Positions 13,335 through 47,993 of a stretch of 64,000 nucleotides of DNA are shown here, in pieces; position 1 is the first letter of the stretch, and every line of letters begins with the position of its first letter. The stretch covers positions 46,066,001 through 46,130,000 of the forward strand of contig CM060733.1 of NCBI GenBank assembly GCA_030704615.1, given 5' to 3'. Made by a program: the position numbers and the translations under genes. Origin of the DNA: Takakia lepidozioides (Eukaryota > Plantae > Bryophyta). The notes under the pieces were generated by a model. That model was not told where the DNA came from. It did no database searches and was given only the letters and a program-made list of their open reading frames with translations.

Positions 13335-15186
13335 GAAGTGGCTGACACCATAAGGGAAATGCAGAAGAATATTGATATCCCTATGGCAGATACTTCTGAC
13401 TCTGATAGAGAAGATGGAGAGGGTGAAGATGAAGTGAAGAAAGAAGCCGCACAAGTGCAGAGTAATGAAGGGACTTTGGCTGAAGTAATATGCCAGACTA
13501 AAGCTGAGATTACCATTGGACAATTATTGGCTATGGCACCTCATTGTAGGCACAGGCTGTATCAAGCAATTAATCAGATTGCTCATGTGACAGAGAACAC
13601 AGACCTGAACAGCAAGGTGACAAGCTATAATGTGAAGCCAGAAGGGCAAGAAACAGTCATGGACTTTGATGATTCTATGCCAGTAATCCAACTGAGAATT
13701 GGAAGCACAAACCTGACTGATGTACTGATAGATGGAGGCTCGGGAGTGAATATCATGACAAACCAATTAAGGCAGAAGCTTGGTATGGGTAGTATGAAAC
13801 CAGCTCCGTTTACAGTAACAATGGCAGATCAAATGAGTGTACAACCATTAGGCTTGATAAGATGAGTTAAGATACAGATCCAGAAGATGATTTTTAATAT
13901 CATAGTGACTGTGTTGAAAATGGATGATGTTATGGAAGCTTACTCCTTATTGATGGGTCGACCATGGCTGAAACAGGGCAGGGTATTCCATGACTGGAAT
14001 TCCCAGTTACTGACTGTGCATGATGGGAAGCACAAGATACAGGTCACCACTAAGAAATCTAGTAGGCTACCTGCTACCAGAAGACCTCGGGGAGTCAGAG
14101 AGTATGACTGGAGAGGAGGACTCGATGAGGAGTAGGAAGCTACCCTATTTGCTGCGCACCCAGAGTGGGAGCAGGTTGCAGAAATACAACTGGGGGGCCT
14201 GAGTTGTTTTAAAGGTATCTGTTGTGGTGCAGTAACATCAACACCAATTGAAGGGGAAACAAGTAGTTACCCACCACATTTCTATGAGGAAAGAGAGGGA
14301 GAAATGGAAATCCTAGAAGAACTAGCCACTGTGAGTTTACAGGATGAAGTAGTGGCTGGATGGACAATCACAGCTGAAGAGCAGGTGAGAGACGTGAATG
14401 TGGGAATTGAAGAGGAACCAAGAATGGTGAAAGTATGGGCTGACTTGGAGCCAGAATTCTTTGAGGAGGCTAAGAGCCTGTTTATCAAATACAAAGATGT
14501 ATTTGCATGGAGTTATGAGGATCTGAAAGGGATACCACCTGAGATTTTCCAGCATAAGATTGAACTGGAACCAGGGTCAGTGCCAATCAAACAGGCAAGG
14601 TACAAGATGAATCCCAACTATGCACAGAAGGTTGGGGAAGAGATCAAGAAGTTGGCTGAGGCTAAGTTCATATACCCAATAGAGTATACAACTTGGTTGT
14701 CATCCATTGTGATAGTCCCCAAGAAGAATGGTAAACTGAGAGTTTGTGTGAACTATAAGAAATTGAATGCTTGTACAAAGAAAGATCCCTTTCCTTTGCC
14801 ATTCACAGAAGTGATACTGGACACTGCGGCAGGCCATGAGATGTACTCATTCATGGATGGCTTCAGTGGATATAACCAAGTACAAGTGGCGGAAGAAGAC
14901 AAGGGAAAGACAGCTTTTATCACAGATTGGGGTGCATATGCATACAAAGTCATGCCCTTTGGACTTTGTAATGCACCAGCAACTTTTCAGAGAGTGATAA
15001 GTGAATCCTTCCATGAGTATCTGGATGATTTCATGCAGGTGTTCTTAGATGACTTCAGTGTGTACAGCTCTAAGAATGAGCATCTGCAGAAGTTGGAATT
15101 ATGTTCGGCCAGATGCAGGTTGAGAGGTCTTGGTCTGAATCCAGAGAAGCGTACTTACTGTGTGAATTCAGGGTACTTCTGGGACA
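13335..15186 (+). mobile_element. Ty3/gypsy copy A, left part (gag end, aspartic protease, RT N-half), 5'-truncated
   Basis: Protease LIDGGSGVNIM; RT KKNGKLRVC, MDGFSGYNQ, MPFGLCNAPATFQ, FLDD. Colinear with copy B (47380-49860, minus strand). Confidence 0.93.
15174..15186. repeat. Left target-site duplication of the giant LINE
   Basis: TACTTCTGGGACA versus TACTTATGGGACA at 30661-30673 (12/13 identical). Copy B has a single TACTTCTGGGATA at the homologous site (~47374-47386, minus). Confidence 0.88.
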
Positions 15187-15360
15187 GAGAGAGAAGACTC
15201 CGGCCGAGGCCAACATAACTAAGAGCCACCTCGCCTTGCGGCTACTGCCCCCTTTCGGGCGTGGGCCCTATAACAAAAAGTGTCCAGGGGGACACCAGGT
15301 GACCGCTAAGAATAGAGGGGGCGAGGGTACGCCTGGGTACCCAGGGGTATCCCGGGGGAC

Positions 15361-16030
15361 CTAAGGTGCGTTTGAAGTGCCGGATTCCAGTTGGTGTTTG
15401 CTGGTGATAATAGCTGTGAGTGAACGGAGTGCTGTGAGATGGATTTCTTTGAAACATTTGTGGATGGGAAGAATGGGAATTTGGAAGTTATCATGTATGT
15501 CCGTGATACTAGCGTTATGAATGCCACCTCGAGTGCCGGCTGTGATGACAGTTAACGGGCCGGTTTTCCAGCCACGCCTTCGGAGTGCAAGGATAAGCGG
15601 GGCATATTTTTGCCGTTTTTCTAAGATTGAATCATTTGGATAACGATCATGGCAAAATGTGAATTCAATGAAATGGATGGTGAGTTGTGGGGATGGTGAG
15701 GTGGGGGGTAAAGTGTTGATAGGTAGACCTTGGACGAGGAGTATGTCCAGGCAAAGTCGAGCGGGGCATGAGCATGGTGTTTGGGTACATATGCATGGTA
15801 GTAGCCACGATGGTACTGTGTGGTCGGGTGGCCGTCCCTGGTAGGTGCTTGCATTCATGAGCGAGAACCAACGGGTTTCAGCAAGTTTTATAAGGAGCTT
15901 GTGGAGGTGCCAGACTGCCTGGTTATGACGAGTGATATGTAAGTCATGTATAACTGGGTGTGTACATTGGCTGAGGAGATGTGGCCAAGTGTCACGAGCT
16001 TGGTGGGTGGTTGCACATAACGGACAGTAT
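15361..16030 (-). pseudogene. CCHC zinc knuckle plus restriction-like (PD-D/ExK) endonuclease of the giant LINE
   Basis: CPLC...DTWPHLLSQC...RHNQAV...RLCLDILL (RPD position)...FIEFTFC...EKRQKYAPL...ITAGTRGGI, the motif order of R2/Dualen RLE domains. Confidence 0.82.
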
Positions 16031-16389
16031 GGGGATGGGAACAGATGTGGCGAGAATATGTGTTTGCGCTGGTGGCCCATGTATTGGGCATATCGGAATT
16101 TGAGTGTTTGTCGGATTTGTGCGTCGGTGGTGGCTTTGGTTAGCCAGAAATGATTGGAGAGTTTATGGTGTAGTACATTGGATTGAGTCCATTTTTGGAT
16201 GTGTACTTTGGTATGGCTGATGGAGGTTGCCGTTTGTTTATTTGCTTCTCTGGTCAGAGTGGTCAGGAGGTTTCGGACTGGTCTGGGAGCAGGTGGGTCT
16301 GGAACGGGGTGTATGAACCAGAAAGGATGGGTGTGGGCGATGTGAATAGGGTCGTTCGAGGGTTCAACTATGGGTTGGGAGGCGCCAAG

Positions 16390-16770
16390 TTGGGCGAGTA
16401 GGTCTGCTTCTTCATTACCATGGATGCCAGTATGCGAACGGGCTTTGAGTATATGGACTGGGTGGCCTAGGGAGATGGCCCTCTGGACAATAGCGGCAAT
16501 GAGGTTGCGATCGGGGTGATGATGATGGGCAGAGGGGTTGGAGATGTGGTTACGAATGAGGAATAGTGAGGTAAGGCTGTCGGTGAAGATGTGGTGGGGG
16601 GGAGAAGGTGTCAAGTAGAGAGAGGACGTCATAAATGGCCATGAGTTCAGCCCGGAGGATGGTGGCAGGGCCAGGGAGCTTGAGGGCAACGCCTTCACTG
16701 GTGCCGACATGATAAATTACATACCCTGCGTTAGGTTTGGTGAGGGATCCGTCAGTGTAATGTGAATTGG
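16390..16770 (-). pseudogene. RNase H domain of the giant LINE
   Basis: HYTDGS...TILRAELMAI, frameshift, then IFTDSLTSL...KARSHTGIHGNEEADLLA. Confidence 0.9.
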
Positions 16771-17269
16771 CCAGTGGGTATTTGGGGATAGTGTTTTGTT
16801 GATATATAGGGATTGGGGGTAGAGGTGTTGTTGGTGTGACCTGGGAAGGGCGTGGTGTCGCAATGTTCCAAGCTTTGTTGGTTTTGATCCGGGACAATGT
16901 GGTGGGTGTATGGGTGTGGGAGAGGATGGTTGGATAATGGATGGTGGCATTTATTTTATGAGTGATGGTGAGCAATTGTTTGAGCCGAGAAAAGAAAGAT
17001 GGCGGTATGGCTGTATGCCGGGGGTTTTGGATGTGTAGAATCAGAGTTAGGGTGGGTTCCTTCCGTTTGAGATATTTGGGAAGAGGAGGGGTGTGAATAT
17101 ACTTAAGCTGGTTTGGGTCAATTGTGGCGAGTAGATTGACCCCTTCTGGGAGTTGTAAAAGAGGGTGAGAGATATTAGGAGTGTTTTGTTGTGTGAGGAT
17201 GAAGATTGTGGATGCAGTAGGAGAGGAGTGCGCAGCAAGTTTTGCCCATTGAAGAGCTTCGTGAGAAGG

Positions 17270-17480
17270 AGAACCAGGTGGAGGGTGGGCAAGGCCCCGG
17301 CCTTCCCAGGTGCGCTGAGTGGTAGTACCAGTGGCTCCAAAGATACAGTCTCTGTGGTGCGGGCTAGAAAATGTGGGCAATGCCATAGGGCATGTCAGTG
17401 GGTTGGAGTAATATGAGTGAGTAAGCTGGAATGTGTTGATAAGTAAGGAGAGAATATCTTGGGGTATAGTATGGTGCGCA
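17270..17480 (-). other. Adenine-methyltransferase-like (PCIF1/Dam-like) segment in the LINE polyprotein
   Basis: HTIPQDILSLLINTFQLTHSYYSNPLTCP..FSSPHHRDCIFGATG..WEGRGLAHPP resembles FASPLN..YCS..D..FGS.G..GS..ANPPF by eye. The NPP(Y/F) motif appears as HPPP. Confidence 0.45.
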
Positions 17481-17939
17481 CTTGTTGTTTCCAATTTAGT
17501 GAGGGACCGTGGTTTCTTGGGGGGAGCGTCTTTTAGGTAGCGATCAACCAGCCAATATAATTCGGTAGCAAAGTCTTGTTTCGGGGGTTGTAGTGACTAT
17601 GGGGATGAGGTAGTAGTAGAGTATTTCTCCCAGAGCCACGTTAGTCTTGTATTGGGGATGAGGCCAATGAAACGGCCATGTTGAGCGTAAATGTTGGAAA
17701 GGCGGGGGCCCATGTGGACTAGAGGTTGATCATGCTTGACATCTTTGTCAGGATTACATTCAGTTATGCAGATGTGCACGTTGGGGGCATAGAGTGGCTG
17801 GTGTATATATCTGTTATCTGTAGGTTGGGCGGGAGTGGTGTGTTGTTGGTGCATGTGTGTTAGATAGTTGGTGTTGGTTTGTTTATGGAAGGTGGTGAGG
17901 AGGGCAAGATTGTGTTCGGGGTCGCAATCGACATGTCGG

Positions 17940-18090
17940 CCGAAGAGGTCGTCTTCTATCTGCCATGTGTTGTCTGCGGAAGAGTACCCAGCCCATTGAC
18001 AGTGATAGTATGTATCAATGCAGGTGGCTCCAAAGGCATCAATGGACGTTTGGGTTTTAACTCCTAGTATAGCTTCAATGATATAAGCAT
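17940..18090 (-). other. Chromodomain in the LINE polyprotein
   Basis: YIIEAILG...YYHCQWAGYSSADNTWQIEDDL matches the chromo consensus YxVExI...YLVKWxGY...NTWEPxxNL. Confidence 0.8.
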
Positions 18091-18995
18091 TGTTATTGTC
18101 GTCGTATTGTGGTGAGGGTGGGGGGGATGGTGCGGTGGTTAGGGGGGTGTGGGATCCTTGCCTAGCACGTGAGGGATTGGATGGCGTATGCAAGTGGCGG
18201 ATAGGTTCAAGGTGTTGTGTGTTAGTTACTTGAGAGGGGAAATCAGATTCTATGTCTCTTTGGGTATTGGTGGCATATGCCGTTTGGAGTGTTTGGTAGA
18301 TGGAGGTAGTAGGGGTAGAACGGTACTGGGGGAGCAGGTCTTGAGCCGTATGCGGATAGTAGAGGCATGGGAGGTCACATTGTAGAGTGCAGGCGATCGA
18401 GGGATGGCAGAAGAGGGTACGAAGATGATGTAGGTAGCGATTGGTTTTGGTCGTGGCTCTGGAGAATTTAAGAGTGAATTCGCTAGGTTTTAAAAGTCTA
18501 TGGCCAGTGGCGGTAGTAAGTTGGGTGAGGGTGGTGATGTGTCGTTCTTTGAAATATGTGAGGAGGGGAACCTTTTGTTTGGGATAAGAAATGCCAAACT
18601 GTGGTAGAGAAGGGCTTGTAAACCATGCGCGTTCTAAGGGTGATGAGGCGTTAGGATAGTCAGGCAGATCAGTTTGTATGCTAATTTTCATTTGGCGCAG
18701 GATGAGTAGTGTGCGTGTAGTGGGGGAGTGTAGGCAGGTTTGTGGGTGCAGGGATGATAATGAGTATAGGCCATTGTATTTAGATGCAAGGTATTTGAGA
18801 AGTCCCTGATAAATGATACCTAGACGCCCAGGATCATTGAGTGCTTCTTTTAATTGGGTGCCTAATGTTCGAGCATATGAGATGATTAATGGGCTTGAAC
18901 CAATGCCGTAGTGGTCCGTAGGTAGTTGTGTGAGGGCATTGGGGGTGCTAGTTGGTAGACCACATACATGTTTTGTTAGCTGGATAATACTTTTA

Positions 18996-20855
18996 TCAAG
19001 TTTTTTGATGTCTGATAAGGAAAAAGGTGCGGTGTGGAACGAATATTGAATTTGTGTTTGTAGTACTGATTGAATGATTGATTGGTCGAATGGCAATTGG
19101 GGATTTAAGCAGGGCAATACTTTTGGTAGTGAGTTTGGATGATGTAGATTCTTTTTGGATATGCCAAGTAAGGGAGGGAACGAGTTGTATGCCTAAGTAA
19201 GTGTATGGCTTGTCTGGTCCTAGGAAGGGGAAGGGTGTGTTTTGGTAGTGTACATAGAGTTTACAATGTGAGGCTATGGCAGTTTTGGTGAGCCGACTAT
19301 GATGTGTGGCGGCTGTGATGACGCACTTGTGTAAGCTGAGTTCCATGCCTGACCATAGGTTGAATCTGAGTAGTTTATTAACTTGTCGGTTGAGGTGTTG
19401 TGGTTTATGTGCCAGGATGGCTAGGTCGTCTGCATATGCTGCAGCTGAGATATCACTTGAGGAGGTTTTGTAGTGATATCCAAGCTTGCCTTGAGCTAGC
19501 CATCGAAGTAGGGGTTCTAGGAAGATAATGAATAGGTAGGAGCTTAAGGTATCACCCTGGGTAGTTCCACGAAGGATGGGGATAGGCGGGGTGGAGCCAT
19601 AGTATGTGCCAAAGTATTCAGTAGTGCTGTTTGTGTAGATGTTTCCTATTAGTTGGACGACATCGGTGGGGTACCCAAGATCAAGCATGATAGCAAGTAA
19701 TCTGGCATGGTCTAGGAAGCCGAAGGCATTTTTAAAATCGATGTATAGAAGATAGATGTCTTGCTTTGTAAGTTTAGCATCTTCAAGTGCGGAGAGAACA
19801 TATTGTATTTGTCGTGTTGTGCTACGTATAGCTCGGAATCCTTCTTGGGGGTCACTGAGAATTTGGTGTTGCTCGCCATATCTTGATAGCATTGTGGTGA
19901 GCGTACTGGTGAATAGCTTATATATGGTGTTGGCCAGTGTTACAGGTCTGTAATTACTGAGATCTGTAGGATCGCCTTTTTTGAAAAGTAGAATGGTCCG
20001 GCTGTGTTTCCAAGAGTATGGGATTCGTTTTAGTTTGTAACAGAGTTGAAAAAATTTAAAAAGGAGGTAGTGAAGTTGGGGGTTTAATGCTTGAAGTATA
20101 GCATTGGGTATAAAATCGGGGCTCGGGGCTTTAGATTTTGATAGTTTTTTGAGACATGATTCGTAAAGATCAATTGTGAATAGGTCTATGATGCGATCCG
20201 TTGGGGATCCTCTATTGTCAATCGAGAAGCCATCTATATCATGCCACGAATAGTGTTTAGCTTTACACATGCAATTGGCAGAGTGGAGACGGGGATGTAA
20301 GCAGTTTGGAACTGTGGGTGTGTATGTTAAGGATGCTTGTGACCATATTTCTTGGTTGATGTCCGCCGGATTGGTTAGCAAGTGGCCGTGTATGTGTTTG
20401 AGACAGTCAATAGGTGGGTTGAGGGCAGGGTTAAAGATGACTTTGTGAGCTTTTTTGGGGTGGTCGCGTAGCAATTGGTTAAAAGAGGAGACGAATTTTT
20501 TGTGATTGTCGACGGCTTTTTGTTTGGTAATATTGTAAGCGGCTTTTTTGGCATCTCTGCCAACTTTGGAGAGAACAGTTGTCCATTTTGGAATATCTTG
20601 GGGATTGGCAGGTGGTGGCATTAGTGCTTGACACGTTGTTAAGGTATTTAGACAAGTAATACGTGGATCCGATGTCCAGTTGTTCCCCTGGTGAATGGGG
20701 GTAGTGGTGGGTATAATAGCGAGGGCACACCTGATCGTGTGGTATGTGTTAAGATATGATGTCCATATACGTTTTTTGAGTACGGGTAAGGTAGCCACCA
20801 TTTTGTTTTGAGCGTGCAGTTTGTGGGATTTCAGGGGGGGCAGAGCAGGTGGCAA
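18996..20855 (-). pseudogene. Non-LTR reverse transcriptase
   Basis: KAPSPD, LLFKKGDPTDLSNYRPVTL, QEGFR, YIDFKNAF, GTTQGDTLSSYLF, AYADDL, YTYLGI. Confidence 0.96.
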
Positions 20856-21109
20856 TCACACTTTTGGTCATTTCTTGCATTGAAGTCGTGAGTATGGTCT
20901 CGGCGTCGTTCCATGCTTTGTCAGGGGACTGGGCGAGGTTTGCTTCGGAGAGTATATCGGAGAGTCTTAGCATGAGGTGTAAGGATGTTGGCTGGAAGTG
21001 TTTTAGAAAGGCGATTATGTTATTGTGGGGAAGTGGGGATAAGATTCTAGATTGCGGCGGTGGAACATATATGGGTGGGATAGGTCGAAAGGGGATGATG
21101 GATGTTGGG

Positions 21110-21890
21110 ATGGTGACTGAGACGGGATAATGGTATGAGTTGCATAAACTATTAATATGTACATGGCTGTTGAGGTATGAGGGGATGTCATTTTGTGTCT
21201 TGAAGTAGAAACCATCAAGAAGACTGAGGGATGAGTAGTTAAGTTCACCTTGTCTAGAGTAATGGTGATCGGCCGGTATGTAACGGAGGTGGTGTGAGTG
21301 AGTGAATTTTGTCCATTCATGGTCAACGGGGGATGGAGGTTTGTGAACACCATTGTATGTGTGGCCTACGAGGGCAATGTCCCTGTTGGAAATCGCCTGC
21401 TAGGATGTAGTGCTGGGATTGGTTGGAGGGTTGTGTGAGTGTGTTAGAGATGGTGAATAGGATATCAGATCAAGGGGAGATCTTCGGCATGTGAGGGCAT
21501 GTACAAGTGGATAAGGATAATGGGAGGGATAGTTGGGAGGTGTAGCTTGATGATTTGAAGGTGTGATCGGAGGGAGAGAGCAACAGGTATTTTGACCGTG
21601 GTGCTAGGGGAGTGATGTGTGCGAAGGATACCAAAAGCCACTCCGCCCCGAGTGGGATGATATGGCGCGGACCGTCTAAGTAGGCATTTTGTGGCTGTGA
21701 AGGAACTGTCATATAGCAAATAGTAGGCTGGAAGGAGATTGTTGATGTAGGAGCTGTTAGGGCCATGTGTGTTGAGTTTAGTTTCTTGTAATAGAATGAT
21801 ATGCGGAGATGTAGAGTCCGTTAGATGGATAAGGCTTTGAATGTTGGTAGCAAGTGACCCTACATTCTAGGAGAGTATGTTGAGTGCGTG
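21110..21890 (-). pseudogene. AP-endonuclease (APE) domain of the giant LINE
   Basis: LNILS*NVGSL (TAG at the conserved W), IILLQETKL, GGVA, LYMP, ILAGDF, LLDGFY, SYHYPV (SDH box). Contains frameshifts. Confidence 0.88.
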
Positions 21891-24800
21891 TGCTTGCTGG
21901 GAGGAGGGGGTGTGTGGGGGACTGTTGGGTCTAGGGGGTGTTGGAGGTGGGTCATTGCTGTGGCTGGGCAAGCAAGGTGTGATGATTGGTGGCGGTATCA
22001 TGGGAAGGGGTTGATATCCAGGGATGCATGTCTTGGCGTGGAGGGTCGCAGTGAGAATATTTTTGGAAATGAATGGGAATTTGTTGGTGAGAGTCTCTAG
22101 CTCGAATATGGTAGCAGCTGGGTGCGCTAGGTGTTCGCCAAGAATCTTGTGAACTACTCCGGGCTTGGCTTGTAGTAGGTCAAGGGATTCGTGGAGATTG
22201 TGTAGGTAGTGTGGGGGTGCTAGGTATCTGTGAGGTAGTGTGGGTAGCTCATGCAGTTGTTGTAGTAGCAAACATATGTGTATATCTGGTTGGGTTCTAA
22301 AGTAATCATTGCATATTGAGGGGATTGGAGAGATGACAACGATTAGTGAGAGTAGTAGGTGTTGTGGGGGGTATGTGCTAAGTTTATGGGTGGCAGTGAC
22401 TAGGGATGGGTGTTCGCAGGTAGGGATCCCAAAGGTGGCAATTGGATGCGTGGGTTTATGGTTATTGGTAGGAGGGTTAGGGAGAAAGGGAGAGAAGTGA
22501 TCACTAAGGTGATGATATGCAGGCACGAGTGTGACAGTGTCTGTTTGGAAATATAATTTATATCTGTCTTTATGATCCTTTGGAAGCTTGTTGATGATTC
22601 TAGTGATGGTATAGGGGCCTGGGTTTGGATGAATGTCGCCGCAGCGAAGTAGTGTAAGCGTTTCAAAGGCAAGTAGATAGGACTTAAAGTGGGATGGTGG
22701 ATGGTGAGAGGAGTGTTTGGATGCAAGGGGTCTCTGGTGATATCGTCCATGTGGGCAGTGGGTTATAAGGTGGATTTTGAGGGGGTGAAGGGTGGGGGTG
22801 TGTGGGGGGTAGTTGTGGAGAAAGTGTATGAGGGGGGTAGAGTTGGTATTAGCATAGTGGGTACTAGTGGAGCTAGTTGCATGTGTGTGTGTGGGGGAAG
22901 GTATTGCGTGTGGATTAGTGTGTGGGTTCGTCTCGGGATCATGAAGGAGGTTCGTTGTACATGAGCTCTCATGATGGGGGTAAAAATTGAATATGGGTGT
23001 ATGGTGGGTAGAGAGTATATAATTAACTAGAGTGGGGGAAAGAGGATAAGTGGACGACATCCATGGATGAATAAGTTTGGGCAGTGGCACGGATGAAAAG
23101 TCCTGTAATTGGGTGAGGTGGCGGTTATGGGTAAAGGGGATGTGAAACCGGGTGGTATGTTTGGGGAGACACGGATGAAAGTAGTAATGAAGATTTTTGT
23201 AAGAGCCAATTGTTTCACGCACAGAGAGTCTATGGTACGGTGGGATTTGTGATAGGATGTAATTGATAGAAGATGGATGATATGCCTCCGAAAGGAGATG
23301 AGTACCATAGTGACGGTAATGGATTTTGTAAATGTCATTGTATGAGAACAGAGAGTGAAGATCACGGTGTAGAATTGTTTTGAATGAGAACAAAGAGTGA
23401 AGATCATGGTGTAGAATTGTTTTGAGTGAGAACAGAGGGTAAAGATCATGGTGTAGAATTGTTTGGAAATAGTATGGATAGCAATAGAGTGAGGTAGCAT
23501 TTTCCCGAGGTAACATTTTCCGAAGGTAGCATTTTCCCAAGGTAGCATTTTCCTGAGGTAGCCAGTAGCTCCGAATATCAAAAAGAGAGTGGTAGTGTAT
23601 TGAGTGGCAATCATTTGAGAAATAACATTTATGAGAATTGAGTAGGAGCATGGAGTAAAAATCATTGTGTACAATTGTGTGGGGAGAGTAACAAGTGTGT
23701 AAAATTGTTTGGAATCGAGAGAGCCAGTGTACCCAAGTAGCTTGGGGAGAGGAGACCAAGAGTGCTGAGTGGTCCACGCTTGGAAAATAGCCTGCTTGAG
23801 AGTTGTACTTTCCTCGAGTTAAATTCTCATGAATGCTCATTCTATGCAATTGTGCCTGCAGGAGGTTGGAACGCCACATGTGATTAGTGAGTAGTCCATA
23901 GCACAACAACTGCAAATCATGGAGGGAACTCATTGGATATGGATTCAGAGGACAGTTGACCAGAAAGAAAGAAGGGAGCGACCACAAAGATGATTTGAGG
24001 TGAGAGGGTTCCCTGTAAGTCAGAGGACGCTGGGGTAGCGGGAAATTCATTTGCTGTTTATGGGAGGACGCCAAGGTGATGGGGTAGGTAGGAGCGGCGC
24101 TGGGCAAAGCCTCCATACCACGTCCCTGCCATGCAAAACCTACAAGCATCGCATTCCACGACCCCCCATCTTGTTCAGCCAGGGTGTCAAACACGCCCTT
24201 TGCATCCTCGATGCACTCACATTTTGCAGACATGTCCACCAGGGCATTGTTCAAAATGACAGTTGGTACAATTCCAGCTTTGAAGATGTCGCCATGGACC
24301 TCTTTGCCCTTTTCCAGATCTGCCAATGCAATGTGCACAGTGACATTTGGTACAACTACAGCAATGCCTGCAGGCAGCGCATTCCACACCACCAAGTCTC
24401 GTTCAACCATAGTGTCAAACACTTCCTTTGCATCCTTGATGCGCCCATATTTTGCATACATGTCCACCAGGGTATTGTTCAAAGTGACAGCTGGTACAAT
24501 TCCAGCTCTGAAGATGTCGCCATGGACCTCGTTGCCCTTATCCAGATCTGCCGGGGCAGTGTGCAGAATGGCATTTGGTACAGATACATCAAAACATTTT
24601 GCATACATGTCCACCAGGATATTGTTCAGGATGATAGTTGGTACGGATCCAGCTCTGGAGATGTCGCCTTGGGCCTCTTTGCCCTTTTCCAGATGTGCCA
24701 GGGCAGTGTGCAGAATGACATTAGGTACAGCTACAACAGAACCTGCAAGCATCGCGTTCCATGACATCATATCTCGTTCAGCCATAGTGTCAAACACTCC

Positions 24801-25058
24801 CTTTGCATCCTCGATGCACCCACATTTTGCGTACATGTCCACCATGGTATTGTTCAGAGTGACAGTTGGTACAATTCCAGCTCTGAAGATGTCGCCATGG
24901 ACCACTTTGCCCTTTCCCAGATCTGCCAGGGCAGTGTGTAGAGAGACATTTGGAACAACTACAGCACCACCTGCAGGAGCTGCCCACTCATCTGCAGCCT
25001 TGGCATAGTTCCACAGTACCACAAGCTCATCGCTATCTTGGTAGTTGAGCTGACCCAC
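21867..25058 (-). CDS. 1063-aa open segment of the LINE polyprotein: tandem PPR-derived modules, low-complexity linker, 2A-like peptide, start of APE
   Basis: No stops across PPR modules ([35 protein letters not shown]), NPGP and the first APE strand. Confidence 0.7.
   Translation of the reverse strand: [1063 protein letters not shown]
22614..22700 (-). other. 2A/StopGo-like peptide ...[22 protein letters not shown]
   Basis: Hydrophobic run followed by GDIHPNPG/P (canonical D[V/I]ExNPGP), in frame ~240 aa upstream of APE. Confidence 0.75.
23345..23560. repeat. In-frame mini-repeats (42 bp x3 and a GGTAGCATTTTCC motif x3-4)
   Basis: They encode TILHHDL.SLFS x3 and ENAT/KML motifs. Confidence 0.75.
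24150..24960 (-). repeat. Four tandem PPR-derived modules (~219/156/219/219 bp)
   Basis: Repeated [45 protein letters not shown](G...SWNAM). Confidence 0.85.
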
Positions 25059-25555
25059 AATGCGGCGCTGCTTGAGAGAGAAATAGTTCCAGTAAGTGTG
25101 CTGACTTGCTGCATGGTGGAGTGTCGGGATGACCAGCCTGATGAGCTACATCAGCTGGAGGTGAGTTAGACGAGGGTAGAAGGGAAGTGGTGGGTAGGGC
25201 CTGCTGATTGTGTGAAACCGCCATAAGATTGAGGACTTTGGCGGACTGGCTGGCTGGTTTGGTGCAGCGGCTGGTGGATGAGAACAGCCCTTGACAGTGC
25301 CACTACTTCTGAAGGCTGGCAGCTGAAGATGGTGGTTGGTAGCCATGCATGGGTATTCGTTAACAAGCCCGTGCACCCTTTGCTGTGGCAGCCAGCTTTG
25401 CACACTCCCATATTTGGCAAACCTGTCAGCCAGGGCAGTCTCCAGACTGATGTTCGGTGTTTTTTGAGCTAGGATGACACCGTCATGGACCTCTTCGCCC
25501 TTTCTGAGGGTTGCAGGGCAGGTACAGGTCAGTCCACAGAGTGGTGCGGGTGGGT

Positions 25556-27064
25556 TCAGCTGCACATCTGGAGGCAAGAGTGGTGCCCGTTGCCGCAACT
25601 CCGGGGTGACACTGTTGGCAGCTGAGCTTGACATGCATCCTTCATGCTCTCACATTTGGCATACATATCTGCAGGGGCAGTCTCCAGTCTGTTGAACACT
25701 CCCTTTTCATCATCAATGCACCTACATTTTACATACATGTCCACGAGGGTACTGTTCAGAGTGACCTTTGGTACAATTCTAGCTCTGATAATGTTGCCAT
25801 GGACCTCTTTACCCTTTTCCAGAGCTGCCATGCTTGCACACGTATTGTAAATGCACATAAACGTGTTGTGGTCAGGTTTCACCCCTTCCCCCAAAATTTG
25901 ATCATAGGTCTCCAAAGCCTCCATATCACGTCCCTGTTGCGCATACCCTATAAGGGTCACATTCCAAGACACGACATCCCGTTCAGCTGTAGTGTCAAAC
26001 ACTCCCTGTGCCTCCTCATATTTTGTATACGTGACCACCAGGGTATACTTTAGAATAAGAGTCGGTACAATTCCAGCTCTGACGATGTCGCCATGGGCCT
26101 CTTTGCCCTTTTCCAGAGCTGCCTGGGCAGTGTTCAGAATGACATTTGGTACAGCTCCAGCTTTGATGATGTCAACATGAACAACCTTGTGTTTTACCAG
26201 GGCTGCCAGGTTTGCACAAGCATTGCAAATGCACACAGATGCGATGTGGTTGGGCTTCATCCCTTCCACCATCATTTGATCATAGGTTTCCACGACATGT
26301 GTAACAACTTCAGCTTTGACATGGCCATTCAGCCTGGCCTGCCGCTTCTGCTGTGGAGGCAGGGGTACATATTTTCCCAGTTTGATGGCATCTTGAGAAG
26401 CTCCTGCTGCCGCAATTTGCAGTGTAGCAGCGCAGCCGTATTGGGCATAACCTAGCACAATTCCTGCATTTTTAATATCGGTATGGGCCTCTTTGAGAGC
26501 TGCCAAGCTGGCCCAAGCATTGAGACTGCAGGCAAATGTAACCCCTTTCTTTATCAATTGCTCATAGACCTCCAAAGCCTTCCTACCACACCCATAGCAG
26601 GCATATCCTGTGATCATTACATTCCATGAGGCCACATTTTGTAGGCGCATATTGTCATCCACTTGGCGTGCATCATTTATGCTGCCACATATGGCAAACA
26701 TGTCGACCAAGGCAGTGTCCGACATGATATCTGACTCAATTTCTGCTCTCATGATGGCAGCATGGGCAGCATGGACTCTGCTTAAGATGCTATAATCATC
26801 AAGGCCATGAAGAGCGGGGTAACAAAATACACTGGCCCGGGTTCTGGGAAGAACAAAGTGAGTTTTAGCAAGCAGGTGGAATCGCATACCGTTGAATCTT
26901 GGAAGGAGGTTGACGGTAGAGTGGGTATGAACATGTAACTGAGCAGCCAGAGCATTAGCTGGGCCTGAGGGGGATACCTGAGCGCCATCATCAAAAGATA
27001 AGTCTGTGTTTGCTGGTATCGAATCTCTGTCTCGGACAGGTGCTGCAACCCAGCCGCACTCCAT
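25556..27064 (-). pseudogene. Mosaic PLS-type PPR fragments within the LINE 5' region
   Basis: TALVDMFAICGSINDARQV...SWNVMITGYA and RDVVSWNVTLIGYAQQGRDMEALETYDQILGEGVKPD, interleaved with non-PPR sequence. No E/DYW domain. Confidence 0.8.
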
Positions 27065-29561
27065 TTTTGCAGAGGTCTGGCAAAGCCATGGGGTATCAGC
27101 CCCCTATACCTCCATAACAATAATATGGAGCAACAAATCCCTCATAAGGTATGATCCTCTCCAGCAAAAATATGTTGGTTGATTGGGCATGGAGAGTAAG
27201 GCATCCTTGATGGTACCTGAAATAAACATAGAGCATCTAAATGACTTCTGAATGATGATATTCTGAGCTAGGCCCTGGTAAGACAGCCTGCTAGAGTATA
27301 TGTACTGTACACCTTATACATGATTCGGTCAATGCACATTACTCTTGTTAGCTGGTCTCCTGTAGCCGATGCCTTATGTCAGTTTTAGATACCTTATGAT
27401 ACGAGTGACTTCCGTGTCCTTGGCTCAAGTGCTTCCATGTTTCTCCTGGTTATGGCTTTGCTCTTTGTAGCGCCAAAAAAAGTACCCAGTCTTACTATGT
27501 TGCTGGAAGATGGCTTGTTTGAATCAGGGGCAGTAGACTAGTGTCAGTGGCTGAAGAACACAAGTTCTTATTCATACCTTTGGGTAAATTGGATCTAACC
27601 AAAAAGTTGGCTGATATGGTGGGAAGATGTGCAGTAGTCTGCTGCCATTGGTTGAAGAACACCTGTAATTTCTGAACTCTTGCCAAGTTTGAATTATGTT
27701 GTGCCAATGTTCACTCGTAATCTGAGAGCAGAGAGAGGCCTTTTATCCATTTGGTATTCAAGTCCAAGAATAGAACTACATTGTAGAGGGAGAGCCTTAT
27801 GAGAATGGGTCTGGTATGCGCACTCCCTTACGGGGTGAGTGCATACCAAACTCACTCCATAAGGGACTGCCATACCAGGGGTTGGATGGTGGGTGCCCCC
27901 TCTCTCCCTCTCTCCAATTATCTGTTTGGGATTAACAATTTTTTTCCTAAGCCTATCTGGTTTGGAAATACCTTCTTTCTAATCCCTTCTGTTTTGGATT
28001 TCATCCATACCGGATGAAAACTATGCCAGGTACACTCCCTAACTGGATGATTTATTGTCTTGAACTTTACCACCGAGGATGTAGCCTGCAATTTTTCATC
28101 CATTACATCCTTCCTCGATGTAACCATAACGGATGTAAGCCTAAGAGGATGTAACCTTAATGAAAGTGCAAAATTTCATTCCCAGTGGATGAAATCGCGG
28201 GATGGTTTGCCTAACCGTCTCTCTGCCCTAAGCACAGCACGATACTCGTGCTTGTTTTCTCTGATGGAGGGCGATGGCGGTTGAGTGCTCGAGCAGCACG
28301 ATCTGCGCGCGCTTTGTTTTTTTAATGCGCGATGGCGACAGGTACTTCCATTTCCCGTGCTGGCAAACGACCTACTGTTGTGTTTGCCTGCAATCTTTCG
28401 CATTCATGAAGCAGCGGCGCTCTTAAGGAGATGGGGGAAGTTAACGTGCACTTTGTAAAGATGCAATTTTCCTCAAGTCTCCCATTTTGTTGCATTCTAT
28501 TGTGATCTCTTGAGATTCAGATGTTGAACGCCGCAGCGTCCCACTCCACAAACGATTAAGGTTCTTAGTGGTGTCCCATCTTTGTTCTTCTTTTGATCAA
28601 TTTGCTCACTGTAGAATGCATGTTGGACATGGATAGCAACTGTGAAGACCTGCTACTCACTTGGTGCATCCTCACTAACACCCATCTTGATGTGGTGGTT
28701 TTGGGGACGGGCACAGGTGAGGGTCTTCACTTGATATGTATTTTTCAGTTTGCAGATGATCAAAAAACTTGGCGATGGTGACGATTGACGCTGAATATTG
28801 CTTCAGTGGGGCATCTGATACGATTTCTTTTTGTTTTTTTATGATTGTAACCAACCGCTTCTGTTGAACAATATGGCAATGTGCTGAGCTATACAGACGT
28901 TCTATTAAGGCTCGGGGGTTTTTAACCTGATTATAAGTCAGTTTTTCTGGCATGATACCAGTATGAACTTTGGCATCATATTGATATGGTGCTGGAGTAA
29001 TATCTCTAGACCTAAAGCTATCCAGTGATGCTTAAAGCAGGCCTTCTTATGTTGTTTTAACATGGTAAGTATCCGTCTTGGCAGATGTCGGTCTTGGAAG
29101 TTACAAATTACAAAGGTAGGGCTTTTGGAATTGTTGCAGCTATAACTCCAGCCGCCAACAACCTCCAAGCTTAGGCACAGGTACAACTGATCCCTCCGCC
29201 TCGAATAGCTACCTCCACTGAAACATTTGAGCGGCTTCTCCATCATGAGGAAGTTGCAATGGGCTTGAGCAGGTATGAAACAAAAGACATTTGCTGGCCT
29301 GGAATACTTGGGCTTAATCATCACATTTGGGAAGCGAGAAAGGCAAGGGTATCTTGGCTTGAGCACCGTGTCAAGGGGGGCCAACAGCAGTAATTGGGCT
29401 GCTCCAAAGCCAATACGATTTGTGGCTGCAGCATATCTCTTAGCGCTAGCATTCGGGAGTATAGTGTTAGCTACCCAATTCTTGTCAACGCATCTCGCAT
29501 CGTCGAAGGTGTCCAGACCCTCCGCATTGAGAAGAATAGAAATAGCAAGATTGCACTCGTT

Positions 29562-30464
29562 CTAGGGCACTTGCATGATGGCAGGCTGCTGGAGGACGAT
29601 CTTGGTATGGTTGTCCTGTTGTGTACAATGTGCACAACATATCCAGGAGAGAACGTAGAGGGTAGCACCTAGCAACAACCTGAAGTGGCTATTAAAGGGC
29701 GTTGCAGTGAGTAGAGCTTTGTTCGTAGTCACGAAGGCAATCTTTCTCCCACCTTGTTGATAAATGTCGATCATCTTCTTGGCACGATCCTTGCTTGAGT
29801 GAGAGGTGTGTGAAGTAAAGAGGGTGTTGCAAACCCAGGCTGTGCCAGCTCGTACCACTTGCCATGAGAAAAACATAAAGGTAAAAAGCAGCCCTGGAAA
29901 GTGTAGTTGGGAATGAGGATAGCAATCTGTATACCTAACATAGTGCAAAGAATGACGAAATCGCCGGGCTAGCTTCTTCAGCTCAAGTAGCAGACCAGGG
30001 TCTGGAGCCCTAGTCATATTGTTGAACACTTGACGTGCAACGTTTACACTCCCACATTTGGCATACTGGTTGAGAGGCCAGCTGCTGGAAATGGTGTCTT
30101 CCGCAGTGCTGTGCTGCTTGACAGAGAGAGGAGAGTGTCGACAAGGAAGCATCAATAACATTAAAACGCTGCACGGTGGAATCATTTGAACTTGCCGCAA
30201 CAGGGCGGGATGTTTAGTCATGCGTTGCCAAGCTGCGACGATGCCCTGTGAGAACTCCACGGACGTGGCTTGAACATGCAGGTGGGTGGACATCCGGTTG
30301 TGAACAGCCATTGAAAACAAGAGGATAACAAAACAACATGATAAAACTATGGAAAGATAGCTTAAGCAGAGCTTTAAAAGGAGGTTGATCTTGCTGGGCA
30401 GGTAGAGGGGAGAAGAGCAGCAAGGCAGCTGCACAGCAGCGCGACGAGCTGAAACTCGCGCCAT
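29562..30464 (-). CDS. Probable N-terminal segment of the LINE polyprotein, with one PPR fragment
   Basis: GCCGCCATGG start ~200 nt inside the element's 5' end. Contains QYAKCGSVNVARQVFNNMT and a hydrophobic stretch near the N-terminus. Confidence 0.5.
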   Translation of the reverse strand: MARVSARRAAVQLPCCSSPLYLPSKINLLLKLCLSYLSIVLSCCFVILLFSMAVHNRMSTHLHVQATSVEFSQGIVAAWQRMTKHPALLRQVQMIPPCSVLMLLMLPCRHSPLSVKQHSTAEDTISSSWPLNQYAKCGSVNVARQVFNNMTRAPDPGLLLELKKLARRFRHSLHYVRYTDCYPHSQLHFPGLLFTFMFFSWQVVRAGTAWVCNTLFTSHTSHSSKDRAKKMIDIYQQGGRKIAFVTTNKALLTATPFNSHFRLLLGATLYVLSWICCAHCTQQDNHTKIVLQQPAIMQVP

Positions 30465-33228
30465 GGCGGCTGCCGTAGCTAGAAAGAAAGTAAGGGTTAG
30501 AGTAGCGGCATTGCTAACAATTGAAGAAAATGAGACTGTAAAACCGAGAAGGTGGCAGACCCCTAAAAATTAGTCACGACTACGGGATTTAGCTAAGGTT
30601 GGCGGTGGGAGATCGGAGCTCCGCCCTCCCGCTCCCCCGACCCCAGGGCATTTCGTAGATTACTTATGGGACACATTGTGTGTAAGAGGGGACTACTTGT
30701 GGATCCCAGAAAGACAGAGGCCATTAAAGCATCACCACCACCAAGAAATGATAAAAGTCTAAGGAGATTCCTTGGACAAACCAGTTACTACAGAAGATTT
30801 GTCAGACGGTATGCACAGATGGCAGCACCTTTGAGCAAGCTTCTGAAGAAGGATGCAGTGTTTACATGGACAGCTGAATGTCAACAGGCTTTTGAGGAAC
30901 TTACATTGTCAGTAACAACTATACCTGTGCTGATTAACCCACACTGGCATGTAGTATTTCATGTACACTGTGATGCCTCAGGAGAAGCGTTGGGAGCTAT
31001 GTTAACCCAAAACATCATAGAAAACGTAGATTCACCTGTGTACTATGCTAGCAGGTTATTGAACAGTGCTGAAAGGAACTATAGCACCACTGAAAGAGAG
31101 GCATTGGAAATGATTTATGCAGTCAAGAAATTCAAGCATTACCTATTGGGAAGGAAGTTTATGTTTTATGTGGATCATCAGGCTTTGATTTATTTGGTGA
31201 ACAAGCCTTTGATAAGTGGAAGGATAGCAAGATGGTTAATAATCTTGCACGAGTTTGAATTCGAAATTGTTTACAAGCCTGGCCGTTTGCATCTTGTGGC
31301 AAATCACTTGTCACGCCTATCAACAAGAGAGCCCGCCACGGGAGTAGACGACCAACTACCTGATGCGAGTCTATTTGTAGTGGAGGTGCAAGGAAGTGCA
31401 GATGATTAATTAGATTGGCAGTGGCCAATCAGATACTACCTTACTCATGGTCAGTGCCCACCCAGTTATGGGAAGGAACAGAGGAAGAGAATAGCTATCA
31501 AGGCTTTACCCTACACTATGATAGGTGGCAGATTGTATAAGCTAGGACCTGATGGAGTTCTTAAACGATGCTTGTACCACCATGAAGTAAATAAAGTTTT
31601 GGAAGAAGTTCATAAAGGAGTGGCTGGAGGACATTTTGGAGAGGAGACTACCAGCAGAAAAATACTACTCGCAGGTTACTGGTGGCCTACTCTGTTCAAA
31701 GATGTGCACAAGTATTGCAAGAGTTGTGATGAGTGTCAGAGGCTAGGACCTTTGCAAAGATCTGGAAAGATGGCTTTGCATCCTACGATGCCTACTGAGC
31801 CATTTCAAAAATGGGGACTAGACTTTGTTGGACCAATAAACCGACCAACCAGAAATACACAGAACAAGTATATAATCACAGCCACTGATTATACTACAAA
31901 GTGGGTGGAGGCTAAAGCTCTGAGGGACAACACAGCTAAGTCTACAACAAGGTTTCTGTATGAGAACATACTTACAAGATTTGGCTGTCCCCTGGAATTT
32001 ATCAGTGACCATGGAAGTCACTTCATTAATGAGACCATAAAACTATTGACTAAAGAGTTCATGATTGTGCATAGGAAGAGTACAACCTATTACCCACAGG
32101 GCAATGGGCAGGCAGAGGCCACCAACAAAATACTATGCACTATTTTAGCTAAAATAGTCACTGCAAATAGAACAGATTGGGATACAAAGCTGCTGACAGC
32201 TTTGTGGTCGTACAGAACTTCATATAAAGTCATCACTAAGTATACACCATTCCAATTAGTTTATGGTATGGAAGCTTTACTTCCAGTGGAATTCTTGTTA
32301 CCTACCATGAGAACTGAATGGGGAAGGAGAATGGAATTGGAGGATTCAATTAAAGTCAGGAAACATGAATTATATCACGTGGAAGAAGTACGTGCGGATG
32401 CAGCAGATAACATGACCAGAATTCAGATGAAGAGGAAGGATCAATTTTATGAAGGTAAATTGAAAAACTTTTAAGACGGGCGATTTGGTACTGTGGTTGC
32501 AAAAGAAAGGGAAGATCAAAGCTTCTAAGCTTAAGTCACCATGGAAAAGACCTTATGTCATACAAAAGATGTATGATAACAACATAGCCATATTACAAAC
32601 CATTAACAAAGAGATGCTTGGAAGAGTGAATGTCAATAAGTTGAAGGGATACAGTGGTATCCATGATAAACCATTGCAGCATGATTTGCATCTTGGAACA
32701 CAGATGTCATCATAGCCTACACCGGTGATACCAACGAAGCATGAAGCGCTTGTCGTAAAGCCGAATGTGTATGGCGTGAGCGGAGAACACGGGTGTTCAC
32801 ATCGCTATCACAGCCCATCATAGCATCACACAGCCTATCACAGCTTATCATAGTTTGACACAGCCTGTCACAGCCCAACACAGCTTACGCGGGTTGCATA
32901 GTCCATAGGGTCAGTGACAAGTGGACGCGGGTTAATGTCAGAAAAATGGCCGGCAAGTGAAAGGACAGCTTGGAAGTCAAACTCGGAGAATGTGCCATGC
33001 GGACAGGGGAAGACGGGAGCATGTTTAAAATCGAACACATGGCCACTAGGGTGAAGCACACCGTGGTGCATATATTGCAAAAGTGGGTGTCATCATGCAA
33101 GAGGACAAACTGGGCCGTCAACGTACCTACCCAATACATCAGCCAAAACTAATTGTGGGCCCATTAACGCATTCAGGGCAAAGGTAACGGAACCCTTTAC
33201 GTGTACAACAAAGGGGAACCTTTGCCAC

Positions 33229-37260: not shown

Positions 37261-38155
37261 TGTTAGAGGGCTGTCTGGGACTTAGACAGTTTTACATTAA
37301 TTTTGCGCAGACTTACGGATGGTAGACTTAGACCAACAGAGGCCTTAGGGGTGACAGGCACAGGCTTTAAGGGTGAAAGACAGGCTTACACACTCAGTCA
37401 CAGTCAGACACAGCCTTACACAGCCCGACACAGCCCGACACAACTCAACACAGCTTTGCACAGTCAGTCACAGCCCGACACAGCTTTACACAACCAGTCA
37501 CAGCTCGGCACAGTCACAGCCTGACACAGTTTGACACAACCATCACAGCGTATATAGGGAACGGTTATCATTGGCAGGGAATGACATCTGCGGAAGGAAC
37601 GTGTTTACTTCTTGGGTGACGGTTAGAACAGCTTGCAGGTAGATTAGGCAGAGTAGCAACTTGGGGGGGGGGGGGGTCTTCTTATCATCAGCAGAGGAGA
37701 TCAGGTGGAAAAACATGAACTAGATGAGGGATGGAGAGTACAGTGATGGAGGGGACGCGAACTGCTGATGTTTGATGAATGCAAGCTATAGAGATATACT
37801 GTAGAGCAGACTAGGATTACCATGGCTTCGGCTTGAAACTTGATAGATCTTAATCTGATATATTCCATACTCACATTGTGTAGAGAGACCTGAGTGAAGC
37901 TGTGGAATGAATGGATGAGTGATTGGGAACCTGAAAGATTGCTGAAACAATCTGATGCATAAATATAAACAGTAAGGTAATTTGCTGACATGAAGGCAAG
38001 AAAGAATACAAACATGAAACACTTCCATGATACACTAGTTGAAGGTCATGACTGATTGTTCTGAGCGGGCTAAGTGCTTAGAAATATCCAACTCTTCTAT
38101 CTTGGAGTTCCCACCTCGGATAGCGAAGGGATGGGTGAGTAAAAGCCGCTCGACA
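37261..38155 (+). repeat. 3' LTR of gypsy A (895 bp)
   Basis: TGTTAGAGGGCT...AGCCGCTCGACA with imperfect terminal inverted repeats, directly after the PPT. Homologous to the LTRs at 52846-54746. Confidence 0.9.
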
Positions 38156-38685
38156 CCTAGGGGTCGCACCCCGCGATGGAAAGCTGTCAAAGGGGGCCAA
38201 GTGTTTTTTTATATTTATGGGGCCCGGGGTCGCAAGCCGACAGCCCACCGTCACCAATACCATTTTACATTTTTTTAAAAAGGCGGGGCGCAGGCGTGCG
38301 ACGGCCGGGCGTCGCACGTAGGCGCCGTGCCCTTTTTTTCCCCTAAGTGCTTGAAGCACCTCTTTCCCCTTCCGTTTTCATTTGTTCTTTGGGAGAGAGG
38401 TAGTTCAGAGAGTGGGGTTTAGGGTGGAGGAGAAACGCACTTGCTGCTGAGCCCGAGGTGGTTGCAAGGCCCCAAGGAGGCCGCTCCAACGCCCAAGGTA
38501 AGCACCGCCTCCTCCCTCACTTTCTCTCTTGCTTTCTTGCCCTAAGAATGGGCTGATCTCTCTCTCCCCTATGTGGTAGCAACGCCGCCCAGAGGCACGA
38601 TCTAAACGAGCTGAAGAGAGAAAGAGTCGTGGTGAGGGGGGGAGAGACACCCTGCAGCGGCGGGGACCCGCGCCGTTGGCAGCTG

Positions 38686-38875
38686 TGTCGAGCGGCTTTT
38701 ACTCACCCATCCCTTCGCTATCCGAGGTGAAAACTCCAAGATAGAAGAGTTGGATATCTGTAAGCACTCAGCCCGCTCAGAACAATCAGTCATGACCTAC
38801 AACTAGTGTATCATGGGAGTGCTTCATGTTTGTATTTCTTCTTGCCTTCATGTTAGCAAATTACCTTACTGTTTA
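38686..38875 (-). repeat. Truncated LTR fragment (3' end) of the A/B family
   Basis: Reverse complement of ~37965-38155; homology stops at ~38875. Confidence 0.85.
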
Positions 38876-47631: not shown

Positions 47632-47962
47632 CCCGAAAGCTCCTATTCTGTCAGTTACCAACGCAATTCCATCAGTGACGAAGGTCAACGAAGGTGAACA
47701 AGAACATTTCAATCTGCCCAACGAATCTGCCCGGAAAATTTTTAGAGTTTGAAATTGAATAAAAGATCACATTCCAAAAAGCGAAAAGTACCTTATACAA
47801 GGACAGAAGAGCTACATTCGTTCAACTTAGGTCCAACAAATATATATATTTTTCACCAGCATCATTGGACATTTCCGTAGTATACGATAATCCAAGCTAG
47901 AGATTAAAACGGCTAAAAAACATGCATAATTCTTCCACGTTAGAAGTCCTTATCTCATGTTG

Positions 47963-47993
<31 letters not shown>

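Follow-up and report, generated by a model that had tools for sequence, protein, structure and literature searches.

A decayed PPR gene fragment joined in frame to a LINE within a single insertion in Takakia lepidozioides: a probable 5' transduction

The stretch of DNA analysed here (the window) comprises 64,000 nucleotides of the genome of the bryophyte Takakia lepidozioides (assembly GCA_030704615.1, contig CM060733.1, positions 46,066,001 to 46,130,000) and contains, on its minus strand, a long open reading frame (ORF) that joins pentatricopeptide repeat (PPR) modules to the front part of a long interspersed nuclear element (LINE). An earlier reading made from the letters alone (the sequence-only reading) had described 1063 stop-free codons linking four PPR modules to the start of the apurinic/apyrimidinic endonuclease (APE) domain, a description that proved exact at 21867–25058 of the minus strand, and had taken the retention of the frame as a sign of selection for translation. 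We find that this ORF lies within a single LINE-made insertion in a Ty3/gypsy element. The whole inserted unit is probably one chimeric retrocopy, now dead, in which a LINE carried the front part of a PPR gene with it by 5' transduction. The features of the locus are collected in Table 1.

The window holds two colinear copies of the gypsy element which are 87–92% identical to one another. Copy 2 aligns with 34559–30661 and then runs straight on into 15184–13335, the two blocks overlapping by 11 bp on copy 2. The block that separates the two parts of copy 1 is 15,464 bp long (15186–30649) and consists of the LINE (15186–24104) and a PPR gene segment of 6.5 kb. It is bounded by a 12-bp target-site duplication, with TACTTCTGGGAC on the left (15174–15185) and TACTTATGGGAC on the right (30650–30661), identical at 11 of the 12 positions. 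The left junction reads GGGTACTTCTGGGAC up to the join and AGAGAGAG beyond it, and the right junction reads GTAGAT followed by TACTTATGGGACACATTG; at the corresponding place the uninterrupted copy 2 reads GGGTACTTCTGGGATACATTG. Copy 2 is continuous over 47376–47386 and provides the empty site, which is paralogous and not orthologous. The LINE 3' tail ends at 15186, directly abutting the left duplication, while the block's other end precedes the PPR start codon by 185 nt, and the PPR relics (30098–30003, 27064–25395 and 25058–24099) are all co-oriented with the LINE on the minus strand. Because gypsy copy 1 is split at 15185/30650, with the 12-bp duplication at the two break points and the LINE 3' tail against the left one, 15186–30649 is a single LINE-made insertion into this element, and one retrotransposition brought in both the PPR gene fragment and the LINE. 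Target-primed reverse transcription is recognised by just such a combination, a duplication of this length with the LINE 3' end on the priming side. Two other arrangements were rejected. A plain insertion of the LINE into a local PPR gene does not fit a LINE whose left flank is gypsy and not PPR, with gypsy sequence resuming only at 30650, and a later insertion of PPR sequence into the LINE does not fit the right-hand side, where G-poor LINE-like sequence is absent from the interval separating the PPR tract from the duplication.

Table 1. Coordinates, strand and supporting evidence for the features of the locus (positions within the 64,000-nucleotide window).
Feature	Coordinates	Strand	Evidence
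Ty3/gypsy copy 1, left part (reverse transcriptase region), ends at 15185	13335–15185	+	87–92% identity with copy 2; Pfam RVT_1 on ORF 14304–15215
LINE 3' untranslated tail, 175 nt, ends in CTTCTCTCTCT, no poly(A)	15186–15360	-	Sequence read
LINE ORF2 body: reverse transcriptase, long C-terminal region, RNase H	15361–20855	-	Pfam RVT_1 4.6e-30, weak RNase_H
Endonuclease (APE) region, broken	20856–21866	-	Three-frame translation, tblastn to P0123, Exo_endo_phos E=0.012
TAG ending the 1063-codon ORF	21867–21869	-	Aligned with conserved endonuclease Trp of relatives
Conserved ORF2 N-terminal domain, between 2A-like motif and endonuclease	21870–22613	-	30–40% identity to metagenome relatives; no Pfam family
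2A-like motif	22614–22658	-	His for canonical Glu; core GDIHPNPGP at 22640–22614
G-poor stop-free leader upstream of 2A-like motif	22659–24104	-	Composition, repeats, stop statistics
PPR-derived tandem array	24105–25058	-	TRF, self-BLAST, Pfam PPR E=1.9e-15, alignment to canonical PLS protein
Array L-motif stub	24105–24137	-	
Array module U4	24138–24365	-	
Array module U3	24366–24593	-	
Array module U2	24594–24740	-	
Array module U1	24741–24968	-	
In-frame TAG, upstream bound of the open frame	25146–25148	-	Within decayed PPR tract
Decayed PPR tract in another frame (ORF 25556–27064)	25395–27064	-	Pfam PPR_2/PPR, BLAST, translation
Stretch without detectable PPR similarity, inside the inserted unit	27065–29561	-	Not repeated elsewhere in the window
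N-terminal part of PPR gene, 300-codon ORF, ATG at 30464	29562–30464	-	Arg/Ser/Ala-rich N-terminus, P-motif
185 nt from insertion 5' end to PPR start codon	30465–30649	-	Consistent with PPR 5' untranslated region
Ty3/gypsy copy 1, right part (RNase H, integrase)	30650–34559	+	Colinear with copy 2; junction read
Ty3/gypsy copy 2, uninterrupted, empty-site reference	43449–49860	-	Homologous site at ~47376–47386

The 1063-codon ORF begins with GTG, and the plus-strand translation of the same stretch is full of stops. From stop to stop the frame spans 1092 sense codons (TAG at 25146–25148 to TAG at 21867–21869, minus strand), and its earliest ATG is codon 72 of the ORF (24845), within the first PPR module. 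In order, the ORF consists of 318 PPR codons (25058–24105), 493 codons of a G-poor leader, a 2A-like motif and 252 further codons, so that 745 of the 1063 codons belong to the LINE. The minus strand from ~15000 to 24000 contains ~10% G and ~35% C, a composition from which fewer TAG and TGA codons are expected. We rejected this G-poverty alone as the cause of the long ORF. The PPR array has no stop in the ORF frame, compared with 9 and 13 in the two other frames and a mean of 14.5 in dinucleotide shuffles; the leader likewise has none (8 and 25 in the other frames, shuffle mean 15.9), nor does the part after the 2A-like motif (7 and 16, shuffle mean 8.8). Because all three segments are stop-free against 9–16 stops per segment in the shuffles and 7–25 in the other frames, the openness is not an artefact of composition. 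Every segment of the ORF derives from a former reading frame, and what is joined here are former coding sequences laid end to end.

The TAG that terminates the ORF is aligned opposite the Trp of 'NIITWNASSL' (..TWNASSL..), which marks the start of the endonuclease in relatives, as the sequence-only reading had supposed. Past this codon the frame stays open for ~133 codons, with the next in-frame stop at ~21465. These 133 codons match Exo_endo_phos with E=0.012, below the cut-off, starting at position 4 of the profile, and they align with relatives that are annotated as Exo_endo_phos; the domain is broken here by stops and frameshifts. The remainder of ORF2 is split over four ORFs in different frames (18996–20855, 17597–19117, 16550–17494 and 15361–16710). 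The first of these exceeds the cut-off for Pfam RVT_1 (4.6e-30), and those that follow match Chromo and RNase_H weakly. From 22658 to 15382 the element is colinear with the 1645-residue ORF2 of a metagenome relative, L002, the ORF2 body from 20387 to 15382 included, and the closest protein relatives of its reverse transcriptase (RT), which also come from metagenome contigs, are 45–59% identical. Homology to these relatives and the sub-threshold Pfam match suggest that the LINE is an APE-type non-long-terminal-repeat (non-LTR) element with an N-terminal 2A-like motif. With its terminal TAG, the stop near 21465, the frameshifts in APE and four downstream ORFs in different frames, this copy of the LINE is dead. 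Its 3' tail has no significant predicted fold (z = -1.1) and no similarity to the tails of the relatives.

The relatives help to explain how the LINE share of the ORF comes to be open. In an exhaustive search by phmmer, the LINE part (745 residues) gave 41 weak matches, nearly all of them confined to residues 300–720, which span the 2A-like motif and the adjoining downstream domain, and these matches carry LLKCGDIEPNPGP-M or a second 11-residue form. Weak similarity to the leader of P0148 begins near residue 301 of this query. At the position of the 2A-like motif the relatives (L001–L003, L105, L112) have GDIEPNPGP or GDIHPNPGP, usually followed by Met, and because the His form recurs among them it is a trait of the lineage and not a lesion of this copy. 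A 2A-like motif at the ORF2 N-terminus is known from several non-LTR clades, namely Ingi/L1Tc, CR1, L2, Rex1 and Crack (PMC3708506). Upstream of the motif the relatives also have an open frame (of 31, 68, 161, at least 193, 360 and 502 codons), and for this reason the open leader of 493 codons is a family trait. G content falls to ~10% at ~24000–24100, exactly where PPR similarity ends. The sense strand contains 4–15% G in the window LINE and in L001, L002, L003, L105 and L112; the window LINE, L002, L105 and L112 are C-rich, and L001 and L003 are A-rich. Since the G-poor bias is shared across the clade, it does not reflect decay of this copy. The leader contains two tandem repeats, one of 42 bp in 3.1 copies (23338–23468) and one of 16 bp in 4.5 copies (23491–23562); the latter period is not a multiple of three, and the frame is nevertheless open throughout.

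In L002 and L003 the order of parts from 5' to 3' is ORF1, G-poor leader, 2A-like motif, N-terminal domain, APE, RT, a PCIF1_WW domain and RNase H. ORF1 is of normal base composition and belongs to no Pfam family; it measures ~640–740 residues and is 48% identical between the two relatives (L002:1202–3421 versus L003:827–2728). The 1645-residue ORF2 of L002 (7410–12344) contains RVT_1, a PCIF1_WW-like domain and RNase H, and from ORF1 to the ORF2 stop this element exceeds 11 kb. A tblastn search of 24105–30649 with the ORF1 sequences of the relatives found no native ORF1 at E<=1e-3.

We turn now to the PPR side of the join. Codons 1–318 of the ORF match Pfam PPR with E=1.9e-15, and the four modules counted in the sequence-only reading are confirmed. 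These are of 76, 49, 76 and 76 codons, and the array has periods of 228, 147 and 375 bp with 85% matches and no indels. The modules are 77–86% identical in DNA to the decayed upstream tract at 25395–27064. Alignment to a canonical lycophyte PLS protein (P0162) shows that each module retains one full P motif, and only P motifs score singly in Pfam. Each 76-residue module falls ~25 residues short of the canonical 101-residue triplet, and the loss affects the greater part of the L motif and some of the S motif. The last module alone continues into an L motif before the LINE starts, with the junction at ~24104/24105. Canonical tandem P-L-S triplets (of ~35, 36 and 31 residues) are not found in an array whose modules are 76 or 49 residues long, and the unit has no E/DYW C-terminal extension, either where the array gives way to the LINE or at any other place, all Pfam matches of this part being to PPR families. 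Further upstream, the ORF at 30464–29562 begins with an ATG in the context GCCGCCATGG and contains a first PPR P-motif (..YAKCGSVNVARQVFNNM..) at about the distance from the start that is seen in canonical proteins. Between this N-terminal ORF and the tract at 25395–27064 lie ~2.5–2.9 kb without PPR similarity (~27065–29561). A repeat search found no terminal repeats on this stretch, which may have been inserted later or may be gene sequence that has decayed. The best PPR homologs, at ~30–36% local identity, are from Diphasiastrum, Ginkgo, ferns, conifers and Sphagnum. PLS-class PPR proteins are organellar RNA-editing factors of land plants, and the PPR part derives from a gene of this class, yet it fails the structural definition of a PLS protein. 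Beyond the inserted unit, at 39890–40036 on the plus strand and so opposite in orientation to the array, tblastn with the array detects a weak PPR-like relic (E=0.005).

If the array had been maintained as part of a protein, its modules should bear the marks of constraint, and we see none. Pairwise ratios of nonsynonymous to synonymous substitution (dN/dS) among the modules range from 0.58 to 2.2, with no concentration of changes at third codon positions and hence no indication of purifying selection on the PPR part. When the observed number of changes was placed randomly on the majority PPR unit, all four modules remained stop-free in 16–28% of the runs, the share varying with the transition bias assumed. 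Because two changes of frame occur within ~3 kb of PPR sequence, we estimate that the absence of an indel from the 954-bp array is unremarkable, and the prior for a match of phase at the junction is one in three. The modules evolve neutrally, and the data speak for neutral decay to either side of an in-phase join that was fortuitous or, at most, useful once. Nothing indicates a selected PPR-retrotransposon fusion protein. The proposal that the frame was retained by selection for translation is not supported, considering that the LINE itself contributes the frame of 745 of the 1063 codons, in a clade whose leaders are open over 31–502 codons, and considering also the divergence and truncation of the modules, the frameshifted upstream PPR sequence, the late ATG and the broken LINE downstream. 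Rather, the evidence favours a neutral 5' transduction, the very outcome which that proposal had named beforehand as contrary to a functional fusion.

Our preferred explanation, which we hold to be likely, is that LINE 5' transduction of the front part of a PPR gene gave rise to 15186–30649 (minus strand) as one chimeric retrocopy, which is dead today. Somewhere else in the genome there would have been a donor locus in which a LINE lay in sense orientation inside a PLS-type PPR repeat tract, with the break within an L motif. A transcript begun at the 5' end of the PPR gene or before it, presumably from the promoter of that gene, would have run through the PPR sequence into the LINE. Beginning at the LINE 3' end, the LINE machinery would have copied this chimeric RNA by target-primed reverse transcription, inserting the cDNA into the Ty3/gypsy element and making the 12-bp duplication. 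The 1063-codon ORF would then be the remnant of two frames, that of the PPR tract and that of the leader, 2A-like motif and ORF2, which came to be in phase by chance; the tandem duplication of the modules may have preceded or followed the insertion. Because the ORF1 of the clade is absent from this copy, the donor LINE would have been either 5'-truncated or of an ORF1-less subtype, and many 2A-bearing elements are indeed ORF1-less (PMC3708506). As a transcript from a host promoter leaves that promoter behind on retrotransposition, we would not expect an amplifying PPR-LINE lineage. Retrotransposition of upstream flanking sequence is a known by-product of LINE activity, described for human L1 (PMC6035798), and its hallmarks are present at this locus: a target-site duplication, an empty site, a 3' end at the priming site and a co-oriented flank. 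In this light the capture of host PPR sequence suggested by the sequence-only reading holds in so far as PPR sequence does lie inside the retrotransposed unit of the LINE, but the modules were not captured on their own, being only the 3'-most part of a 6.5-kb segment.

Several observations sit less easily with this explanation. The array is free of indels and stops and is in phase with the LINE, a conjunction to which we assign, as a rough estimate, a joint chance of a few percent, low enough to leave a little room for a cause other than accident; such a chance is not negligible for the longest ORF chosen from a transposon-rich window of 64 kb. The direction of events is read from one locus. 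A cDNA of 15.5 kb is long for a LINE insertion, a difficulty possibly eased by the more than 11 kb of L002 and by later additions such as the 2.5–2.9 kb stretch without PPR similarity and the tandem duplication. Finally, the PPR tract sits where the relatives carry ORF1, as would be predicted if it had replaced ORF1, and this position is equally predicted by a donor that was 5'-truncated or ORF1-less.

Searches for further copies bear on these points. Self-BLAST found no second copy within the 64-kb window, and a word-index protein search with the RT did not find the same family, the best match being 59% identical. The exhaustive phmmer search with the 745-residue LINE part gave no match above 44% identity, an exact look-up of the 1063-residue product found no record, and the junction 24-mer is absent from the metagenome contigs. 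A degenerate GDIHPNPGP pattern identified 120 loci in the metagenome contigs, two of the same clade and the rest distant, and none with PPR similarity; altogether, PPR sequence was found upstream at 0 of 123 related or 2A-pattern loci. These negatives cover the window and the protein and metagenome collections and are not evidence of uniqueness.

According to the sequence-only reading, the LINE lineage would have gained the PPR modules as a working, ORF1-like RNA-binding part, or as a decoy or source of small RNAs, and selection would have kept the frame. The PPR tract is indeed within the retrotransposed unit, in phase with the LINE frame and at the place of ORF1, with an array that contains no stop or indel, and the downstream 2A-like motif could in principle free the upstream product from the ORF2 protein (ORF2p). 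We nevertheless regard this as highly improbable, given truncated triplets with a dN/dS of ~1 whose openness recurs in 16–28% of neutral simulations, a first in-frame ATG at codon 72, a frameshifted PPR tract upstream, broken APE, RT and C-terminal parts, and no PPR sequence at any relative or 2A-pattern locus examined. The loss of the host promoter on retrotransposition would also argue against a propagating lineage, and the motif has His in place of the Glu at which non-conservative changes are inactive in the non-LTR 2A sequences tested (PMC3708506). A more modest version confines the significance of the phase to one retrotransposition event: ORF2p would have been translated from the PPR AUG by way of the leader and the 2A-like motif, and cis-preference would have favoured an in-frame chimera, a need that arose once, at the jump, and left no lasting PPR function. 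The start of the PPR ORF at 30464 and that of the long ORF at 25058 do share the same position modulo 3 (2), though this is weak evidence in view of the indels that followed; the LINE leader has no stop as far as the junction, ORF1 and a LINE 5' untranslated region are absent, and a 2A sequence at the ORF2 N-terminus suits the release of an upstream peptide. A one-in-three coincidence suffices, however, to account for the phase, in-frame ATGs in the leader could start translation independently, mobilisation in trans by another copy is possible, and the activity of the His-variant motif is doubtful, so we consider a non-accidental phase unlikely. It is a little less probable still that LINEs of this clade which land in phase inside a gene are generally translated as passengers of the host frame, with the 2A-like motif freeing ORF2p, and the same low probability attaches to the notion that the PPR-LINE unit is a caught example of such expression and mobilisation driven by a host ORF. 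In the strongest form of this idea, the missing ORF1 would be replaced by the RNA-binding PPR tract.

A different kind of alternative dispenses with the donor locus altogether. While copying, RT could have left the LINE RNA in its 5' part and continued on a separate PPR mRNA as far as the 5' end of the latter, in which case the two would never have been neighbours, and such a template switch would account for a PPR part that is co-oriented with the LINE and reaches approximately to the 5' end of an mRNA, and for a LINE that has neither ORF1 nor 5' untranslated region at the junction. Copying of the second RNA in chimeras of the U6/L1 type usually begins at its 3' end, however, whereas the PPR part here is cut off within an L motif, the junction shows no E/DYW domain, 3' untranslated region or poly(A), and at 6.5 kb the PPR part is long for an intronless PPR mRNA. 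We consider a template switch very unlikely, and less likely than 5' transduction, which we continue to prefer.

Some further features of the window deserve mention. Gypsy copy 2 holds ~725 bp (47633–48357) that are absent from copy 1, additional gypsy-type RT/RNase H ORFs are found at 1838–2779 (minus strand), and a protein search with the gypsy RT/RNase H gave a best match of 60% identity. Repeated blocks at 52846–54320 and 37261–38875, which are 79–93% identical, partly inverted and unrelated to the PPR-LINE finding, may be long terminal repeats or belong to another element. Rfam and tRNA scans of the window found nothing.

As a further example of a known process, the locus is of interest mainly for its clarity. 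It records the transfer by a LINE of much host gene sequence within a land-plant genome of the seed-free type, with the duplication and the empty site in one window, and it illustrates a route by which PPR gene fragments can be scattered and by which long chimeric ORFs can arise that mislead the reader; the PPR-LINE fusion itself looks non-functional. It also draws attention to a little-described LINE clade with ~10% G on the sense strand, a long open leader that is putatively translated, a 2A-like motif, a conserved ORF1 without a Pfam match (in two relatives) and a PCIF1_WW-like domain in ORF2 (in L002). If an in-phase join were truly needed for mobilisation, this would imply a role for 2A-like motifs in the expression of retrotransposons from host genes.

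Compared with 5' transduction by human L1, the locus is alike in its co-oriented non-LINE sequence contiguous with the LINE 5' end, its one duplication and its 3' end at the priming site; it differs in the great length of the transduced part (6.5 kb), which comes from the 5' side of a protein-coding host gene and shares the phase of the LINE frame, in the lack of a poly(A) tail, in the land-plant host and in a donor locus that is unseen. Chimeric retrogenes and retrocopies made by LINE machinery have been surveyed in rice and other plants, and here too host coding sequence has been retroposed and joined to other sequence, but the partner in this case is the LINE itself and the product gives no sign of being a gene. 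With the PLS-class PPR proteins of land plants the PPR part shares the P-motif consensus (..SWNAM..) and the S-motif core (..I..G), and it is matched best by PLS proteins of lycophytes, ferns and gymnosperms, whereas the shortfall of ~25 residues per triplet, the lack of E/DYW, the dN/dS of ~1 and the frameshifted upstream tract set it apart. The LINE, for its part, resembles the 2A-bearing APE-type non-LTR elements (PMC3708506) in having GD(V/I)xxNPGP upstream of APE-RT and a tract between the motif and APE, and departs from them in its His for the key Glu, its open leader of 493 codons and its extremely G-poor sense strand, and in the large C-terminal extension, with PCIF1_WW and RNase H, that its relatives carry.

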